Of a DNA stretch of 64,000 bases, positions 36,666 through 44,898 are shown one piece after another. The DNA lies in the sequence record PV764938.1; one strand, written 5' to 3'. Made by a program: the position numbers and the translations under genes. The notes below the pieces were generated by a model that saw only the letters and a list, made by a program, of their open reading frames with translations, was not told where the DNA came from and did no database searches. The first letter of the stretch is position 1, and every line of letters begins with the position of its first letter.

Positions 36666-39600
36666 ATGGCCTATCCACTAAGTTCTCCAGGCGTTGATGT
36701 TAGCGTAACAGACGAAAGTTTCTACGCGACATCCGGCGATGGCACTGTCCCTCTGTTTATTCTTGGTACACACGAGTACAAGACACATCCAAATGGCACA
36801 GACATTTCTTCTGGTACTCTTCCAGAGAATGCAAACAAGCTTTACCTAGTCACAAGCCAGCGTGAGTTGGTTCAGACATTCGGTAACCCAATCTTCTATC
36901 AGAAGAATGGCACTTCCCGTCACGGTTACGAAACAAACGAATATGGTCTGTGGGCTGCTTACTCGTACCTGGGTATGGCTAACAAGGCTTTCATCATTCG
37001 TGGTTCCGTTGACTACGCTCAGTTGTTCCCACGCACTGCTGAACCAGTTGGTGAGCCATTCGCTGGTACATACTGGCTCGACACCGCAAACACTTCTTGG
37101 GGTATTCACGAAGGTATCGATTCTACATTCCCAGGTTCTGCTTGGGTTTCGCAGAAGACAATCGTTATCGACGAAGCCGCAGAAGTTGAACACCGCGTAA
37201 TCGGTTCCGTAGTATTTGACGCTTCCACAGATCAGGCAATCGCAACTGCTGGTAACCTCGTCATCAACGGTCAGACTGTTGCTCTCACAGGTGGCGCAAC
37301 TCTCCAGGACGTTGCAACGGCAATCAACGCCGCAGCAATCACTGGCGTTTCCGCTAGCATCTTCCAGCTCTCCGGTAAGTCCCGTCTGCTTATCCGCAAC
37401 ACCGTAACAAACGGCGCAGTAAGCATCGGCAACACAAGCACTCCAGCGGTTCTGGTTGCTCTGGGTCTCAACGGTCAGGAAGAAGCCAACTACGGTCCAC
37501 GTAGCACAATCGGCCTTGATGGCGAATTTGCAATTGTTCTCACAGAGCACAATGACAACGAAGTATACCAGAAGCTTCGCGCTGGTGGTGTAGAGTTCGC
37601 AAACGATCCATTGGCTATGAGCTTCTGGTTCAAGGTTGGTACAGCTAACTGGAAGGCTGCAACTCCGACTCGCGTTGCCGGTAACAACCTGGGCACAGGC
37701 GCAATCGCTGCTATCGATACGAAGACATTGACGATCAATGTAAGCAACGATGTTCTCAGCGCAGTTGACGTAACATTCACAGGCACAACTCTCACAGTCG
37801 CAGACATTGCAACGGAAATCAACACGGTTCTCGCTGCTTTGGTTGGTGATGCTGCAAAGGGTATCACAGCAACAAGCATTCAGGCATTTGCACAGAATGG
37901 TTCGCTGGTTCTCGTTAACAAGATCGGCGGCGACGTTGTTCTCGATAGCGACTCCGATGCCGCTGTTATCCTGGGTGTTGAAACAAAGTTTGGTGTAGCT
38001 CTCCGCTTCTCGCCGCACTACACGATTCCATCCCGTGTTGACGATCTCGGTCGTAAGCGCGTAACTGCTGGTGACGTTTGGATCAACACAACTGCTCCTA
38101 ACAACGGTGCAAACTGGGTTGTAAAGTATTTCAACGGCGACACCGGTCTGTGGAACACAATCACAGCACCGATGCTCGAAAATGACATCGCAGCTAACTC
38201 GCTGTTTGGTATCAATAAGGGTATCGGCTCCCTGTACGTTCGTTACAATCTGAACGGTACAACTGGCGCTCCAATCGGTTCGCACGAACTGCGTCGTTGG
38301 AACGGCATTGTTTGGGAACCACTCGTATACAACTACGGTCCAGTTGCTCCAACTACGGATGCCGAAGAAGGTACTCTGTGGTTCAACGACAACTTCCGCG
38401 TTGACATTATGATCAACGATGGTGACCAGTGGGTTGGTTACAAGAACTTCCCAGGCAACATCGGCACAAGCCAGAACGGTGTAATCCTTTCGGGTTCTAC
38501 TCCGACACTTCAGCAGAATGGTCAGCCACTGTCCAACAATGATCTGTGGATCGATACGACGGATACAGAAAACTATCCGAAGCTGTATCGTTACGAAGCA
38601 GCAACTCGTAACTGGGTTCTCATCGATAACACAGACTCGACAACACCTTTCGGTATCGTATTTGCTGATGCGCGTGCAACTGCAAACGGTCTCCGTAGCG
38701 GTCCACAAGATGCGGCTTCGATGCTTGCTTCTAACTTCCTAGACCCAGATGCTCCGGATCCACGTTTGTACCCAGAAGGCACACTTCTGTTCAACACACG
38801 TTACAGCACAAACAACGTTAAGGAATGGCGTCCAAACTATTTCGCTGGCGAGTTTGAGTCCACCGACTACACACTCACAGACTACGATGTAGGCTTCTCG
38901 ACATTCGACCCGCTTGTTGATGTTGGTCGTTGGGTTACTGTTTCGGGCAACGCGGCTGATGGTTCGCCGAACATGGGTCGTAAGGCTCAGCGTGCAATCA
39001 TCGTTCGTGCCCTCACAAGCACAATCAACACAAACGAAGACATTCGCGCAGAATCGATCTACTTCAACCTGATCGCAGCACCTGGTTACCCAGAACTTAT
39101 CGATGAGATGGTCACACTGAACACCGATAAGAAGGAAGTTGCTTTCGTTGTTGGTGACACTCCGATCCGTCTCGGTTCTTCGGCTACTGAGATCCAGAAG
39201 TACGCAAACGTTGAACTCTCCGGCGCTATCAGCAACGGCGAAGATGGTATCACAACATTCAACCCATACGTTGGTGTTTACTACCCATGGGGTCTCGGTT
39301 CCAACGTTGATGGCTTTGAAATCATGGTCCCACCATCGGCTATGGCTCTTCGTTCGATCGCATACTCGGACAGTGTTGGCTACCCATGGTACGCTCCTGC
39401 TGGTACAACACGTGGTCTCGTAACAAACGCAACAAACGTTGGTTACCTGACAGACGAAGACGAGTTCCGCTCGGTACTGTTGAACCAGGCACAGCGTGAC
39501 GTGCTCTACAACAATAACATCAACCCAATCGCGTACATTCCAAACCGCGGTCTGATGTTGTACGGTCAGAAGACACGTTCGTCCACAGCAAGCGCACTTG

Positions 39601-39941
39601 ATCGCATTAACGTTGCTCGTTTGATCAACCACATGCGTTACAACCTGGACAACTTGAGCCGTCCGTTCTTGTTCGAGCCTCATACGTTCCATACACGTGA
39701 CTCCATCCGTATCGCTTTCGAGCGTTACTTGGCTTCGCTTGTAAATCTGAACGCAATGTACGACTTCATCGTAGTTTGCGATGAAACCAACAACACACCA
39801 GATCGTATCGATCGTAATGAGTTGTGGGTAGACGTTGCGATTCAGCCGGTTAAGGCAATCGAGTTCATCTACATTCCGATCCGTATCGTTAATACCGGAG
39901 ATGATCTCTCCGAGCTTTACGCGGCATCGACAACACTATAA
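36666..39941 (+). CDS. Tail sheath protein (T4 gp18-like), 1091 aa with large insertions
   Basis: LSSPGVDVSVTDES, NEYGL.AAYSYLG, WYAPAGTTRG, RD.LY.NNINPI, GQKT, ALDRINVARL, CDETNNTP..IDRNELWVDVAIQPVKAIEFIYI. Confidence 0.95.
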   Translation: MAYPLSSPGVDVSVTDESFYATSGDGTVPLFILGTHEYKTHPNGTDISSGTLPENANKLYLVTSQRELVQTFGNPIFYQKNGTSRHGYETNEYGLWAAYSYLGMANKAFIIRGSVDYAQLFPRTAEPVGEPFAGTYWLDTANTSWGIHEGIDSTFPGSAWVSQKTIVIDEAAEVEHRVIGSVVFDASTDQAIATAGNLVINGQTVALTGGATLQDVATAINAAAITGVSASIFQLSGKSRLLIRNTVTNGAVSIGNTSTPAVLVALGLNGQEEANYGPRSTIGLDGEFAIVLTEHNDNEVYQKLRAGGVEFANDPLAMSFWFKVGTANWKAATPTRVAGNNLGTGAIAAIDTKTLTINVSNDVLSAVDVTFTGTTLTVADIATEINTVLAALVGDAAKGITATSIQAFAQNGSLVLVNKIGGDVVLDSDSDAAVILGVETKFGVALRFSPHYTIPSRVDDLGRKRVTAGDVWINTTAPNNGANWVVKYFNGDTGLWNTITAPMLENDIAANSLFGINKGIGSLYVRYNLNGTTGAPIGSHELRRWNGIVWEPLVYNYGPVAPTTDAEEGTLWFNDNFRVDIMINDGDQWVGYKNFPGNIGTSQNGVILSGSTPTLQQNGQPLSNNDLWIDTTDTENYPKLYRYEAATRNWVLIDNTDSTTPFGIVFADARATANGLRSGPQDAASMLASNFLDPDAPDPRLYPEGTLLFNTRYSTNNVKEWRPNYFAGEFESTDYTLTDYDVGFSTFDPLVDVGRWVTVSGNAADGSPNMGRKAQRAIIVRALTSTINTNEDIRAESIYFNLIAAPGYPELIDEMVTLNTDKKEVAFVVGDTPIRLGSSATEIQKYANVELSGAISNGEDGITTFNPYVGVYYPWGLGSNVDGFEIMVPPSAMALRSIAYSDSVGYPWYAPAGTTRGLVTNATNVGYLTDEDEFRSVLLNQAQRDVLYNNNINPIAYIPNRGLMLYGQKTRSSTASALDRINVARLINHMRYNLDNLSRPFLFEPHTFHTRDSIRIAFERYLASLVNLNAMYDFIVVCDETNNTPDRIDRNELWVDVAIQPVKAIEFIYIPIRIVNTGDDLSELYAASTTL

Positions 39942-39948
39942 TTGGAGT

Positions 39949-39972
39949 AGCCCGGGTTCGTCCCGGGCTTTT
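39949..39972 (+). terminator. Intrinsic terminator after the sheath gene
   Basis: AGCCCGGG-TTCGT-CCCGGGCT-TTT. Confidence 0.8.
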
Positions 39973-40021
39973 CCTTGACTTCCATTGGATTTTCCTGCAG
40001 ACTGGGTGAAAGGAGAATCAA

Positions 40022-40243
40022 ATGGCCAAGACCCTATATGGCGAACACGAGTATGCCCACGTCCAAACCTTGAATGTGGATTATGCGATGGAGATCCTCT
40101 ATAACGAGGGTGTCTTCTTCCACTGGTTCAAGCGTCAGTACGAAACCATGGAAGAATTCAAAGAGAAAGATCCGATCGGCTATGGCGAATTCGGCGGCAT
40201 TGTAGAGCGAATTTTGCTCGCATCAGTGCAGGAAAAAGGTTGA
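40022..40243 (+). CDS. Hypothetical protein
   Basis: 73 aa, AAGGAG RBS, TTGACT promoter upstream. Confidence 0.6.
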   Translation: MAKTLYGEHEYAHVQTLNVDYAMEILYNEGVFFHWFKRQYETMEEFKEKDPIGYGEFGGIVERILLASVQEKG

Positions 40244-40268
40244 ATCCAGAACCGGTTTACTCTATATT
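40240..40268 (+). promoter_or_regulatory. Sigma70-type promoter for the putative large ncRNA
   Basis: TTGAAT-N17-TATATT. Confidence 0.6.
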
Positions 40269-40274
40269 AACGAT

Positions 40275-41047
40275 ATAACGGTCACTGAGGAGCAATCCTG
40301 AACCTATAACTTCTACACTTGTCGACTAGGCCGCTATTTCTAAAGCGTAAGGATATGCCGGGACTAGAAATCCTGGGTGTGTAGGAGGTGCCGGAATTAA
40401 CCGGCCATAGTGGTCGGCTCGCCTGGTGAAACAGGTGGGCGAGTTTCGGAGTGGGCTTGTCCTACTCAGATGGAGAATGAATGCCCGATAATGAAACTCA
40501 TCGGCAGCTCGGTAGCAATGCAGCACGGGTGTTAAGTAGTTGATAGTCTCTGTTCAGACTTGATACGAAATGAAAAGGGTAGTGAACCCATAGTAATATG
40601 GCGGAGCAGGACGGAACAACCCTCATTCATCTCCTGATCGAACAACTTTTTGAACTAATTATTGACGTATCCGTAAAAGGTTGCGTAAATAAAGACGAAG
40701 CCGACGTAAAAGGGTTATCTTTATCAAGCACAGTGTCTTATAGGCAAAAGGCTTGCACAAGGTCCAAGTCGTCCGAAAGGATGCAATAACTCTAGCTTTG
40801 CCGAAAGCCTTCGGGCAATCGGATGCCGGTTTAGGGAGTGGAGCGCCTAGGCGTGTTGAAGCTTACCTAGATTTGGTAGCGTTTCCCTTTACTCACTTGC
40901 TTCTCAAACTAACAGCCTCACTAAAAGAGAGCACTGTTAGCTGGCCGTTTAGGCTTAAGATGCGGACCAAAGCAAGATATAAAGCCATAACCGTTTGACC
41001 TACGGGTGCAAACAACACAGCCTAGTTCTTCGGAGCTAGGCTTTTTC
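40275..41047 (+). ncRNA. Putative large (~770 nt) highly structured non-coding RNA
   Basis: No credible RBS-led ORF; more than 12 hairpins with GNRA/UUCG loops, long-range helices, own promoter and terminator. Confidence 0.65.
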
Positions 41048-41052
41048 TTTTT
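41019..41052 (+). terminator. Intrinsic terminator ending the putative ncRNA
   Basis: AGCCTAGTTC-TTCG-GAGCTAGGCT-TTTTCTTTTT. Confidence 0.85.
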
Positions 41053-41112
41053 CTTATATTGTAAATGGTTTGTTAACCTAGTATGGTTCGGTCATCAACA
41101 ACAGGAGCTGAT

Positions 41113-41790
41113 ATGTCCTTCAACGTACCAATGAGCAATGTGAGCATGACGCTCAACGCCGACGAATTCATCACGTCGGAATCCGCAAAGCTTGTCTTCA
41201 CGGCAACCTATGCACTGACCGACCCGGCCGCCGACGCAAAGGGTGAAATCCTCGAAGCAGCCAAGAAGCTCTACAACGGCGAATGGTTCGTCACGGGCGT
41301 TTATCGCGAAGATAGCTCCGCCGGCATCGAAACCGTCACTTACAACCTGAGCATCCGTGTTCCGGAAAACTTCGTCAACTCCGTCCGCAGCGGCATCAAG
41401 AACGTCAACCGTTCCGGCTTGAAGTTTGAACTTCACTCCACCGACTACACGCCGACCCAGGCACAGATCGAGGAAGGCAACAAGAGCCTCCGTAAGAAGA
41501 TCTACGCCAAGGCCAACGAGGAACTCGAAATCCTCAACGCCGAAACTTCCGGCAAGGAATCCGACGAGAAGTGGGTTCTCGGTTCCGTTAACTTCAACAA
41601 CAATGGCGGCGCTGTTTCCAAGGCCAACATGCTCCGTACTGCATCGACCGCGATGATGTACGAAAGCGTCGGCAATGCTGCTGGCGGTGGTGCTGCTGGT
41701 GATGACGACGACGGCGAGGCCGGCGTTACTCAGAAGCTCGTTCTCTCGGCTTCGGTCAACTTCACCCGCAAGATCTACACCCGACTCTAA
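41113..41790 (+). CDS. SIMPL/DUF541-like protein (tentative)
   Basis: AGGAG RBS; architecture resembles SIMPL (KLVFTA...FELHSTDY...IY.KA..E...LGSVNF...QKLVLSASVNF); no signal peptide. Confidence 0.4.
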   Translation: MSFNVPMSNVSMTLNADEFITSESAKLVFTATYALTDPAADAKGEILEAAKKLYNGEWFVTGVYREDSSAGIETVTYNLSIRVPENFVNSVRSGIKNVNRSGLKFELHSTDYTPTQAQIEEGNKSLRKKIYAKANEELEILNAETSGKESDEKWVLGSVNFNNNGGAVSKANMLRTASTAMMYESVGNAAGGGAAGDDDDGEAGVTQKLVLSASVNFTRKIYTRL

Positions 41791-41833
41791 TAGGTCTTGA
41801 CTTTGAAGTCGGATTCCAGTATAACTGGATCCG

Positions 41834-42157
41834 ATGACAAAGGAAAAAGAGCTGTTTTACGAGGAGTGTGCGAAGATCCTCGAGGTAGATCACAACTACC
41901 AGGTGCCCTATTCGGCTTACAAATGGCCGAATAGATGGAACAACAGAGCGCCCGGAAATGGGCGCTTTGAAGGCCGTGGGTGCATTATGATGTACGGGGC
42001 AACCTGCATTCATATTATGCTACACACACCTCAGAAAGTTAATTGTCGGGTCAGTTCGGCTGATCAGGCTTATGAGATTCTGAGGACGATAATGGGTAAC
42101 GGAACAAATATTGGAAGCGTTAGGGTTGGCGAGGACGACCCATTATCCGAAGCCTAA
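41834..42157 (+). CDS. Hypothetical protein
   Basis: TTGACT-N17-TATAAC promoter; RWNNRAPGNGRF motif. Confidence 0.6.
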   Translation: MTKEKELFYEECAKILEVDHNYQVPYSAYKWPNRWNNRAPGNGRFEGRGCIMMYGATCIHIMLHTPQKVNCRVSSADQAYEILRTIMGNGTNIGSVRVGEDDPLSEA

Positions 42158-42300
42158 GCCGATCTGCAGTGAATTTCACTGTTGCAAAATAGAGAAAAAA
42201 CTATTATTGGGTAATGCCCCAAGGGAGAGCATGTCTCTCCTTTGGATCGAAATGTAAGGAAATTGCCCCAAAAGGGCCGGATGAGAAGGAGAGGTCAACA

Positions 42301-43965
42301 ATGACTCGACAGACTGATATGGTAAAGGGCCGTGAGGATATGGTCCGCAACAACGCCGGCGGTTTCACTTTCAAGGTGTCCGATATGGATCGCCTTGACC
42401 GCTTCCTGGTTCTCGGAACCGAAGGCAATACCTATTATCAGGGCGGAGCTCAGCTGGCGAAGGAAAACGCTCAGCACGTTATCTCCCTACTTCGTAAGGA
42501 CCCAAAGGGAGCCATCGACCGTGTTGTTGAAGTGAGCAAGGCTGGCCGTGCGCCGAAGAATGAATACGCGCTATTCGTTCTCGCGCTTGCCGCATCGGAC
42601 ACTTCCGAAGACACACGGCGAATGGCATTTGAGGCACTTCCGCAGGTAGCCCGTACGGGTACTCATCTGTTCGAATTCGTGTCCTACGCCGAACAGTTCC
42701 GTGGTTGGGGCGCAGCAATGCGCAAGGCTATCGGCCGTTGGTACACGGAAAAGACTCCTGACGCGCTTGCGTATCAGGTTGTCAAGTACCAGTCGCGTGG
42801 TGGTTGGTCCAACCGAGACCTTCTCCGTCTCGCACACCCAAAGGCGAAGGATGACTCCTTCGACGCGGTTTTCCGTTGGGTTGCAGGCGGTCCGGAAGGC
42901 CTGAAGGCTTCCACTCACGCTGGTGGTAACTCGAAGGCAGCGCCCAAGCTGACCCAGCGTAAGGATGTTACGGCGGCTCTGCCGGGTATCATCCAGGCGT
43001 TCGAAGAGGCAAAGACTTGCGGTGAAAACCGTCTGGTCGCGCTGATTCGTGACCACAACCTGCCGCGTGAAGCTGTTCCTACGGAGCACCTGAACTCGGT
43101 GAAGGTGTGGGAAGCACTTCTCGAGAAGATGCCGATGACTGCTATGGTTCGTAACCTGGCCACGATGACCCGCAATGGTCTCCTGGACTCGGTAACTGCG
43201 AAGCAGAAGGTTCTCGACACGCTCTCGAACCAGGCAGCCCTGACGAAGTCCCGCATCCACCCGATGCAGGTTCTGATGGCGCTGAAGACCTACGAGGCCG
43301 GCCGCGGTGTACGAGGATCCAACACTTGGACTCCACACAAGGACATCGTGAAGGCTCTCGATAGCGCGTTCTACTTGACGTTCGGTAACGTAACTCCGAC
43401 GAACAAGAAGACCGTTTTGGGCCTGGACGTTTCGGGTTCGATGACGTACGGCGATATCGCTGGTTTCATCGGTCTTAACCCGCGCATCGCATCGATTGCA
43501 ATGGCGCTAGTCACTGCAAACGTTGAGCCGGACTACCGACTCATCGCATTCACTCCTGGTGGCTTCTCCCCGAACACGGGCGGCCGTTCCTGGGGCGGTG
43601 GTTCTTCCGTTAAGGAAATCCACTTGGATCCGAAGGGTGGTCTGACCAAGGCGATTGCGGCTGTCAACAACATGCCGTTCGCCGGCACGGATTGCTCGCT
43701 GCCAATGCTGTGGGCTGACCATGTCGGTTACGCTGCGGAGAACTTCTCCGTATACACAGACAACGAAACCTATGCGGGTTCCGTACATCCGTTCCAGGCG
43801 CTGAAGACGTTCCGCGTAAAGCACAACGTCGCAGCAAAGCTGGCAGTGTTCGGTATGACGTCGACTGGATTCACGATCGCAGACCCGACCGACGCGGGTA
43901 TGATGGACTTTGTTGGCTTTGACTCCGCAGCGCCGGAACTAGCTCAGCAGTTCTTCGCAAAGTGA
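42301..43965 (+). CDS. Ro60/Rsr-like RNA-binding protein (TROVE + vWA)
   Basis: NNAGG, DRFLVLGTEG.TYY, RTGTHLF, KYQSRGGWSNRDLLRLAHP, RIHP, MIDAS DVSGSM, TDNET, FVGFDS; AGGAGAGG RBS before ATG 42301. Confidence 0.95.
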   Translation: MTRQTDMVKGREDMVRNNAGGFTFKVSDMDRLDRFLVLGTEGNTYYQGGAQLAKENAQHVISLLRKDPKGAIDRVVEVSKAGRAPKNEYALFVLALAASDTSEDTRRMAFEALPQVARTGTHLFEFVSYAEQFRGWGAAMRKAIGRWYTEKTPDALAYQVVKYQSRGGWSNRDLLRLAHPKAKDDSFDAVFRWVAGGPEGLKASTHAGGNSKAAPKLTQRKDVTAALPGIIQAFEEAKTCGENRLVALIRDHNLPREAVPTEHLNSVKVWEALLEKMPMTAMVRNLATMTRNGLLDSVTAKQKVLDTLSNQAALTKSRIHPMQVLMALKTYEAGRGVRGSNTWTPHKDIVKALDSAFYLTFGNVTPTNKKTVLGLDVSGSMTYGDIAGFIGLNPRIASIAMALVTANVEPDYRLIAFTPGGFSPNTGGRSWGGGSSVKEIHLDPKGGLTKAIAAVNNMPFAGTDCSLPMLWADHVGYAAENFSVYTDNETYAGSVHPFQALKTFRVKHNVAAKLAVFGMTSTGFTIADPTDAGMMDFVGFDSAAPELAQQFFAK

Positions 43966-43971
43966 AGTAAT

Positions 43972-43998
43972 AATGGCCGGAGGAAACTCCGGCCATTT
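43972..43998 (+). terminator. Hairpin/terminator after the Ro60 gene
   Basis: AATGGCCGGAG-GAAA-CTCCGGCCATT. Confidence 0.75.
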
Positions 43999-44043
43999 CC
44001 ATGACTTCCAGCTAAATAGTTCAAAACAGCTGGAGTTACTGAC

Positions 44044-44244
44044 GTGTTTCAGGGAGCATCATACGGAGTTCGGGTTATCGGAAATCTCATTCTGATCTGT
44101 CTGATACTCACGATCATTGCTTACGGTTCTGCCGTAACCTATGAGAAAGAAACGGGCACGTTGATGGCTCGTGAATCCGAACAAACTCTTCCTACCCATC
44201 GTGACCGTTATATGGAAACCAGTAACTTCCCAAGTCACGATTAA
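44044..44244 (+). CDS. Small single-pass membrane protein
   Basis: VIGNLILICLILTIIAYG hydrophobic segment; GGAG RBS with GTG start; TAAATA upstream. Confidence 0.45.
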   Translation: MFQGASYGVRVIGNLILICLILTIIAYGSAVTYEKETGTLMARESEQTLPTHRDRYMETSNFPSHD

Positions 44245-44313
44245 CCGCGTATATAAAAAAATTCGACTGTTCTGGTAAATATCTAAAATGTTTGCTAAAC
44301 AGGAGAATTTCCC

Positions 44314-44898
44314 ATGGCAGAAACCCTTTCTAAATTCGGCGTTCCGCTGGGTGGCGGCTCTGGCCGTGGCGGTATCCTACAGCCCAAGTACAAGTATCGC
44401 TTCCGCGTCCGCGTTGTAAACTTCGGACCAGTAGCCGGCGGTATTGAATTGACTCAGCAGGTTCAGAGCGTTGCAAAGCCAACTCTCGGTCACGAATCCG
44501 TTGCTGTTCATTCCTACAACAGCACTGGTTACTACGCTGGTAAGCACACATGGGAAACTATTTCCCTTGTTGTGAAGGACGACATCACCAACAGTGTTAG
44601 CCGTCTCGTTGGTCACCAGCTACAGAAGCAGTTGAACCACTTCGAACAGACTGGTTTCACAAGCGGCGTCAACTACAAGTTCGTTATGCTCATCGAGACA
44701 ATGGACGGTGGTAACGACGGCGTTCTCGAAACTTGGACACTCGAGGGTTGCTTCATTGAAAACGTTGACTATTCCGAACTCGCATACGATGATTCGTCCT
44801 TCCAGACAATCACAATGAGCATTCGTTATGACAACGCAACACTCGCAGACGGTCTGATGACAGCTCTGCCAGAGTCGATCGCTGGTACACGCCTCTAA
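44314..44898 (+). CDS. Tail tube protein (T4 gp19-like)
   Basis: ILQPKYKYRFRV, LTQQV.SV.KP, YYAGKHTWETI, LETWTLEGCF, ITMSIRYDNA; TAAATA at 44276-44281. Confidence 0.85.
   Translation: MAETLSKFGVPLGGGSGRGGILQPKYKYRFRVRVVNFGPVAGGIELTQQVQSVAKPTLGHESVAVHSYNSTGYYAGKHTWETISLVVKDDITNSVSRLVGHQLQKQLNHFEQTGFTSGVNYKFVMLIETMDGGNDGVLETWTLEGCFIENVDYSELAYDDSSFQTITMSIRYDNATLADGLMTALPESIAGTRL

Follow-up and report, generated by a model that had tools for sequence, protein, structure and literature searches.

Two separable RNA modules upstream of the Ro60 gene of Sinorhizobium phage Phosso: an apparently new phage RNA family and a putative enlarged relative of Y RNAs

The genome of Sinorhizobium phage Phosso, a jumbo phage of 469 kb (record PV764938.1), contains between the genes that we call p73 and p235 a gap of 839 nucleotides (nt), which is the subject of this work. 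We analysed a stretch of 64,000 nt of that record (the window, to which all positions refer; window position 40200 is record position 288200). A preliminary description, made from the sequence alone, had placed in this gap an RNA of the size of GOLLD, of a known or new class and possibly a partner of Ro60. We find that the interval is indeed a non-coding and densely structured RNA locus, which is conserved in relatives and in which almost every helix then listed has compensatory changes, but that it consists of two separable modules, A and B, and not of one RNA class. The gene order around it is sheath-p73-RNA-p235-p107-Ro60-tube, with the following features:

36666-39941, tail sheath gene
40022-40243, open reading frame (ORF) of 73 amino acids (aa), p73
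839 nt between p73 and p235, gap with the RNA locus
40240-40268, + strand, sigma-70-like promoter of module A, TTGAAT-N17-TATATT, found by scan, expected start near 40275
about 40275-40642, + strand, module A, about 370 nt, 16 helices and three pseudoknots (PK0, PK1, PK2)
about 40694-41052, + strand, module B, about 360 nt, Y-RNA-type stem, loop, 3' extension and terminator
41019-41052 (stem-loop 41019-41042), + strand, intrinsic terminator with 10-bp stem, UUCG loop and T-run, found by scan, common to the whole locus
41083/41113-41790, p235
41834-42157, p107
42301-43965, + strand, Ro60 with TROVE and vWA domains (PF05731, 1.8e-47; PF25045, 6.1e-47), presumed protein partner of module B
from 44314, tail tube gene

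The Ro60 gene adjoins the RNA as had been said, about 1.25 kb downstream of the RNA interval and on the same strand. The promoter and the strong terminator proposed earlier were both recovered by our scans. For the promoter the scan by itself is at the level of chance (6 promoter-like sites against 7.1 expected), and we consider the two signals credible because they are conserved in relatives, not because of the scan counts: TTGAC-N17-TATATT or TATAGT is kept at the same position, distant relatives have TTGCGN-N16/17-TATAAG or TATAAT there, and the terminator has a homologue in the short-form relatives described below. Compared with shuffled sequences, the minimum free energy has a z-score of -4.1 on the + strand and of -2.0 on the - strand.

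Searched by blastn and tblastn against 50,697 phage records, the RNA, p73 and p235 matched Phosso itself only. With the tail sheath as query, a scan of IMG/VR identified L002-L004, three relatives whose gap is homologous; in more distant sheath relatives the tube gene follows the sheath gene directly. The search with p235 gave 12 proteins and the contigs L021-L033, all of which have the order p73-gap-p235, the gap being free of called genes, and a Ro60 scan added L034-L038 and L054. The candidates L015-L017 and L019 were discarded as chance matches of a loose metagenome pattern. Nine sequences have the full length of about 780 nt (the long form), while L002, L003, L032 and L033 have a short form, in which the first ~375 nt run straight into a terminator; this terminator and the one that ends the long forms are homologous. 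This means that module B was inserted between module A and its terminator, or deleted there. Neither RNA was found in the cultured relatives Atu_ph07 and PA5oct. In the closest of them, Agrobacterium phage Atu_ph07 (L193, 3820-7004), the order sheath-p107-Ro60-tube is kept, but module A is missing and no Y core can be recognised in the vicinity; the slot of the RNA is filled by small annotated ORFs, and an AT-rich gap of 650 nt follows Ro60.

Module A is composed of two subdomains. Its main elements are:

40278-40425, + strand, subdomain I, the family core, helices P1-P6 and PK0
40426-40642, + strand, subdomain II, helices P7-P14, present in the Phosso clade and nearer relatives
40303-40306 with 40327-40330, + strand, PK0, CCUA with UAGG, 4 bp, CC-Y-A with U-R-GG in the 37-sequence alignment from which RNAalifold predicted it
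40441-40447 with 40493-40499, + strand, PK1, GAGUUUC with the P10 loop GAAACUC, from the helix scan
40551-40555 with 40614-40618, + strand, PK2, P12 loop UGUUC with GAACA, from the helix scan
40472-40483 with 40624-40634, + strand, closing helix P9
40636-40642, + strand, conserved GAUCGAA at the end of module A

The homologue alignment that had been suggested as a check gave covariation in both modules. For 13 module A sequences RNAalifold predicted 77 pairs, of which 64 have compensatory changes, and a subsequent helix scan added PK1, PK2 and several helices. After curation, module A comprises 16 helices with 106 pairs, and 91.6% of the cells are paired over the 13 homologues, against 72% in shuffles and 39-43% when the partners are slid. 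Both sides change in 86 pairs (32-47 in the slid controls), and the covariation score is 0.62 (0.12-0.14 slid). The helices first seen by inspection of the sequence are among those supported by covariation: the hairpins at 40288-40299, 40390-40405, 40418-40443 and 40449-40467 are P2, P6, P7 and P8, and the two long-range helices are P3 (40310-40318 with 40379-40387) and P9. The single strands CCUGAACCYAUAA, GGUGACURGG and GUAA(A)GGUA of subdomain I are conserved, as is its loop GAAUUAAC (GAnUUnAC loop).

Subdomain I is also found far from the Phosso clade. A pattern scan of the IMG/VR viral contigs returned more than 110 stretches, only about 27 of them real by nhmmer or covariance model (CM), and we built a CM, R1, for the subdomain I family (P1-P6 and PK0). 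R1 finds 38 distinct copies with 54-123 bits, exactly one per locus. Phosso 40278-40425 scores 122.7 bits, its sequence being in the seed; the independent support comes from the sequences of unrelated contigs, which have every element and covary. In the R1 alignment of 37 pairs, 82.9% of the cells are paired against 36-48% when slid, and the variable (middle) pair of PK0 is U-A in 19 copies, C-G in 17 and A-U in 2, with 0 of 38 violating it. Nearly all 38 copies come from giant myovirus contigs, where tail-sheath and tail-tube genes flank them. About 20 of these contigs, otherwise unrelated phages, have only the first ~150 nt of module A: the RNA, with its own terminator, stands alone, flanked by homologues of the sheath (45-57% identity) and of the tube (57-70%), and Ro60, p235 and p107 are absent. 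One member of the family (L132) lies between tRNA-Ser and tRNA-Thr. R1 detects none in the other Ro60 phage loci, in the contigs where sheath abuts tube, in Atu_ph07 or in PA5oct, and the stand-alone motifs had no blastn or tblastn match in the 50,697 phage records. A strict pattern gave 15 matches in 185,579 cellular species genomes; 14 fail the CM and one, in a metagenome-assembled genome, is a weak hit of 22 bits.

The comparison with Rfam that had been proposed was also made. Rfam 15 gave no gathering-level match in the whole 64-kb window, and at E<=10 no family for either module (40100-41200, 39900-44400 and 40265-40660, and the homologues L036 and L150); in particular GOLLD, ROOL, OLE, HEARO, raiA, the other large Rfam RNAs, group I and II introns, RNase P and tmRNA gave no covariance match. 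ARAGORN found neither tRNA nor tmRNA in the window. The stand-alone form corresponds to no Rfam family, and we found no description of the module A family in the literature searched. Of the class proposed at the outset, therefore, the absence of any Rfam family stands, and its unity does not. Hence, as far as sequence comparison can tell, the core of module A is a phage-specific RNA family absent from Rfam, whose ancestral state is taken to be a small stand-alone RNA gene with its own terminator between the sheath and tube genes of giant myoviruses. This distribution indicates that module A acts independently of Ro60. Since it occurs as a stand-alone gene with a terminator and once in a tRNA array, we read it as a stable and highly constrained RNA, probably trans-acting and not an mRNA leader. 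It is probably either a component of a complex with protein, or a fold that catalyses a reaction or binds a ligand.

Module B is of another kind. Its elements are:

40697-40903, + strand, Y core, 207 nt stem to stem
40697-40704 with 40897-40903, + strand, lower stem: GAAGC 40697-40701, bulged C 40702, GA 40703-40704 with UU 40897-40898, GCUUC 40899-40903
40705-40714 with 40885-40893, + strand, upper stem, GUAAAAGGG paired with CCCUUUAC, strong covariation
40712-40719, + strand, GGGUUAUC, invariant in 9/9 long forms, loop start UUAUC
40761-40765 with 40964-40968, + strand, pseudoknot from loop to 3' extension, GGUCC with GGACC, next to conserved AAGAUG
40770-40783, + strand, hairpin CGUCC-GAAA-GGAUG in the Y loop

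The helices of module B are 94% paired, with 12 compensatory pairs against 1-4 when slid. The outer pairs of the lower stem covary (GAAGC/GCUUC, AGAGC/GCUCU, GGAGC/GCUCU), five pairs of the upper stem have compensatory changes, and so have the pseudoknot and the hairpin at 40770-40783 (L024, L026), the latter already noticed in the preliminary description. Two other hairpins listed there fared less well: the one at 40801-40822 has partial support, and the one at 40909-40940 is variable, with a compensatory change in L021 that was read by eye. The conserved blocks are RRAGCCGA, GGGUUAUC, GGUCCAAGUCG, CACUUGCUYY and CUUAAGAUGNGGACC. A candidate helix CAAGU/ACUUG was rejected; it competes with the GA/UU pairs of the Y type and variation gives it no support.

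According to Chen et al. (2014, PMC4201824), the stem of vertebrate Y RNAs pairs GGUC-C-GA with UU-GACC, and the Ro60-binding motif is GGUCCGA / GNCGAAN0-1G; in bacterial YrlA RNAs, GNCGAAN0-1G is found close to the 5' end and the loop opens with YUAY. The motif of Phosso, GCCGAC, agrees with GNCGAA at 5 of 6 positions. Beside Ro60 genes we found 22 Y cores having the same architecture and register as module B, with the bulged C in 22/22, GA in 19/22 and the 3' strand CAC-UU-GCYYN. Of 46 distant Ro60 phage loci, 20 have the signature GCCGR-N3-16-GGUUAUC on the same DNA strand as the Ro60 gene, mostly less than ~1 kb from it and in most cases upstream; chance would give about 5 in the 1.07 Mb of all loci together. 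The distant RNAs with this signature are compact Y RNAs, and some of them (L044, L052, L070, L075, L077) have tRNA-like T and D arms as in YrlA. We saw no T arm of the GGUUCGAAUCC type in 40720-40884 and detected no tRNA-like T or D arm in module B. The Y loop of Phosso has 165 nt and that of the clade 120-174, compared with 12-35 in compact phage Y RNAs, or 75-86 in the tRNA-like ones. The compact relative L040 scores 29 bits (E 5e-4) with Rfam RF01656; the Y RNA-type models of Rfam gave no match at E<=10 in the window, and the large loop insert would explain why the Phosso RNA escapes RF01656. Module B is thus recognisable, from its sequence and pairing, as an enlarged relative of a known kind of RNA, the Y RNAs. 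Several phages have two or three Y-type RNAs in tandem upstream of Ro60 (L054 5676-6640, L044 9193-9392, L045 6411-6771, L046 6280-6707, L039 6448-6900), and in L044 a permuted tmRNA (RF04321, 71 bits) and a long tRNA array also lie beside Ro60.

Ro60 is present in 11/11 loci with module B, and L003 and L033 have neither Ro60 nor module B. The guess that the RNA is a Ro60 partner very likely holds for module B, and thus for only part of the interval. We therefore favour, with a probability of roughly 0.72, the following reading: the locus holds two separable RNA modules, A being a new phage RNA family and B an enlarged Y RNA that likely tethers Ro60. Module A would be transcribed from the sigma-70-like promoter, module B having been inserted between it and its terminator. 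Module B most likely binds the phage Ro60 via its bulged Y stem; its loop and extension, possibly with the linked module A, would tether Ro60 to another factor, and the tethered Ro60 would redirect RNA decay or processing during infection. We propose such tethering because of the Ro60-Y RNA-PNPase complexes of bacteria and of a Thermus phage, to which module B would be analogous. The nearest precedent is that of PMC12135203, where the Ro60 of Thermus phage phiLo binds two upstream Y-like RNAs (Yrl1/2) and assembles with the host PNPase. Several facts weigh against this reading. L002 and L035-L038 have Ro60 and no module B within the fetched locus, so the co-occurrence is one-directional, and its events are few and phylogenetically linked. 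The 3' strands of the 22 Y cores were chosen by pairing thresholds, which biases their pair counts upward. Module B does not have the size of a classical Y RNA (80-130 nt, one large internal loop), nor the tRNA-like domain of YrlA, nor an Rfam match of its own. Finally, module A persists without Ro60, and Atu_ph07 keeps p107 and Ro60 without module A, so that the functional link between the two modules is weak.

One could instead see in the interval one indivisible ornate RNA of about 780 nt, of a single new class like GOLLD or ROOL, acting as a unit. The sequence between the modules bears on this question, by two overlapping features:

40665-40672 with 40679-40686, + strand, covarying hairpin of the linker (linker 40662-40691)
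40662-40691, + strand, promoter-like TTGACG-N18-TAAATA, overlapping the linker hairpin and ending 5 nt before GAAGC

No terminator lies between the modules in the 9 long forms, whose sole terminator is shared and homologous to the short-form one; in the short forms a true terminator stands at the position of the linker. The linker hairpin covaries, which implies that the linker is transcribed, and the two observations together argue for read-through from the first promoter. A single transcript of about 780 nt is thus possible. On the other hand, TAAATA is invariant in 9/9 long forms, and L034 has at the equivalent position a textbook TTGACA-N17-TATACA. Boxes of the type (G/T)TAAATA (window 44276-44283 and 41066-41072, L036 ~2960, L123 ~1505) occur 20-40 nt upstream of the start codons of tube, p235 and p107, and resemble T4-type late promoters (TATAAATA). 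Their presence before both the tube gene and module B suggests that the box before module B is a T4-type late promoter, and read-through and an internal promoter may both operate. Also against a single unit, module A is found alone in L002, L003, L032 and L033, its core alone in ~20 contigs, RNAs of the module B type alone beside Ro60 in many phages, and no large-RNA family of Rfam matches. We consider a single indivisible RNA unlikely.

Module A might also be a cis-acting leader or a riboswitch-like sensor controlling, via the following terminator, the tube gene (in Phosso p235, p107 and Ro60). The stand-alone loci, with their conserved pseudoknotted core, then a terminator, upstream of the tube gene, do have the layout of an aptamer with its expression platform. 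However, the copy of L132 between two tRNAs has no gene to regulate, promoter-like boxes of the TAAATA type lie between terminator and tube gene in the stand-alone loci, and 3.3 kb with several genes separate module A from the tube gene in Phosso; by inspection only, we saw no alternative antiterminator pairing. This makes a leader decidedly improbable.

The conserved end of module A leads to a third possibility. The sequence (A)GAUCGA(A) recurs at the end of module A (40636-40642), directly before the Y units of other phages, and ~12 nt upstream of the Ro60 leader hairpin (42244-42251), always just 3' of a helix; the other sites are at ~5530 in L034, ~5667 and ~5960 in L054, ~6782 in L049, and in L164. 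Processing site, protein site and promoter element are all conceivable roles. If it were a cleavage site, module A would be a ribozyme or processing element releasing the Y RNA, and it fits this idea that GAUCGAA is nearly invariant after P9 though unpaired, that the motif directly precedes the Y units in L034, L054 and L049 and recurs before the leader hairpin, and that module A combines three pseudoknots with single strands that are strictly conserved. Yet no self-cleaving ribozyme family of Rfam matches, most stand-alone members have no downstream Y RNA, and the motif may equally well be a protein or RNase site, which leaves cleavage by module A a very slim chance.

That the interval codes for XYS97552.1 or other small proteins is hardly credible at all. 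This GenBank coding sequence (CDS; hypothetical protein, 81 aa, 40753-40998) lies inside the Y-like RNA of the gap, and its ORF is intact in L030. Its substitutions in relatives are spread evenly over the codon positions (13/13/13, 8/6/10, 19/10/20) with no third-position bias, the frame is interrupted by 6 stops in L021, whose nucleotide identity is 87%, tblastn finds no match in L004, L024, L027, L026 and L031 despite homologous DNA, and the changes in this region keep the base pairs. In all related contigs (Logan/ENA) gene prediction put nothing into the gap. The earlier statement that there is no credible ORF thus holds, the reading frame being frameshifted or absent in relatives and without codon bias, and the annotated CDS is very likely spurious.

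The leader of the Ro60 gene itself contains a hairpin:

42263-42291, including the Shine-Dalgarno sequence (SD) AAGGAG at 42286-42291, + strand, Ro60 leader hairpin UUGCCC-CAAAA-GGGC-C-GG, directly 5' of the Ro60 SD

This hairpin resembles the helix bound by Ro60 (UUGCCC-loop-GGGC-C-GR, with GCCGAA or GCCGGA, which are GNCGAA-like). Of 51 distinct Ro60 leaders, whose proteins have 33-68% identity, 27 contain it by a strict script; the Phosso-group hairpin, with a 4-bp stem, was read by eye and is counted apart. Besides Phosso, it is found in L004, L034-L037, L048, L050 and L056-L076. The longest Ro60 ORF starts at 42214, but the conserved hairpin and SD favour 42301, the annotated start. These observations suggest that the leader hairpin is a candidate autoregulatory operator. 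We found no mention of Ro60 autoregulation of this kind in the parts of PMC12135203 and PMC4201824 that were searched.

The two proteins encoded between module B and Ro60 do not settle the mechanism of the RNA; neither has a Pfam or PHROG match. The small basic protein p107, with the invariant motif RWNNRxPGNGRFxGxG, is found only in this clade of phages, adjoining module A and/or Ro60, and accompanies module A in 17/18 clade loci. Its predicted topology, alpha-beta3-alpha, is like that of a double-stranded RNA-binding domain (dsRBD), and it may bind RNA; the comparison of folds gave no significant structural match, dsRBD proteins appearing at E ~2-7 only. For p235 the predicted fold is SIMPL/BP26-like (7c50, E 1e-6; 4hvz, E 8e-5), with residues 164-203 modelled as a disordered Gly/Asp-rich insert. 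In related phages the sheath-tube interval is a hot spot of insertion, where free-standing homing-endonuclease genes (NUMOD3, GIY-YIG, Hef-like) have repeatedly entered (L026 2860-4506, L031 2242-3885, L021 9404-10102, and PA5oct, L194, 3242-4858).

A more ambitious picture can be drawn, which we hold to be doubtful as a whole. Module A would be a new catalytic, ligand-binding or protein-binding class, fused in the Phosso clade to a giant Y RNA, to which Ro60 and, through it, a host exoribonuclease would be delivered or by which they would be controlled; this RNA-only scaffold, built by the phage, would reprogram the RNA decay of the host, and Ro60 would repress its own mRNA through the stem mimic at its ribosome-binding site. 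Large structured RNAs without a known function are, to our knowledge, rare, and the ones that have been solved proved to be unusual machines. Module A adds to them a well-supported new class, with 38 members, three pseudoknots and near-perfect covariation, and one of its carriers, Phosso on S. meliloti, is cultured and genetically tractable. The locus indicates that the Y RNA design can grow several-fold and join another RNA, and the long-standing question of which partner a Y RNA recruits by its second module becomes directly testable in a phage. In addition, the candidate operator of Ro60 suggests a simple autoregulatory loop, and a very likely spurious CDS of the GenBank record is corrected.

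It remains to compare the locus with known systems. GOLLD and ROOL are large RNAs associated with phages, whose function is unknown and which often lie near tRNAs. Like them, module A is phage-borne, large, has several pseudoknots and is found once in a tRNA array; unlike them, it is smaller (a core of 150 nt, 370 nt in Phosso) and occupies a constant position, with the tail-sheath gene on one side and the tail-tube gene on the other, and their Rfam CMs find no likeness to it in sequence or structure (nothing at E<=10). The tRNA array also led us to compare the family with rnaC/rnaD of T4, which are unrelated, none of its conserved motifs being present in their sequence. As to the leader of Ro60, autoregulatory mRNA operators such as the ribosomal-protein leaders and those of T4 RegA and gp32 mimic the RNA target of the protein, and in the same way what looks like a copy of the Ro60-binding helix stands at the ribosome-binding site of Ro60. 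The nematode stem-bulge RNAs, homologues of Y RNAs (RF01656, ceN72-3_ceN74-2), have a consensus UCGGUCCGG..UGGGUUAUC..CCCA..ACUUGACCG which aligns with the phage Y core, although the score of L040 is below the gathering score of 38 and the Phosso RNA itself is not detected. Compared with Y and YrlA RNAs, module B differs by a 3' extension of ~150 nt, pseudoknotted to the loop, and by its place directly downstream of a structured RNA of 370 nt with which it is possibly co-transcribed. It resembles them in being encoded near Ro60 on the same strand, in the stem motif GCCGA (compare GNCGAA and GGUCCGA) with its bulged C and its G-U/A-U step, in the covarying upper stem which ends with GGG/CCC, and in the loop start UUAUC, which is the YUAY of YrlA; the same signature recurs in more than 20 other phage loci, in the compact Y RNAs that adjoin Ro60.

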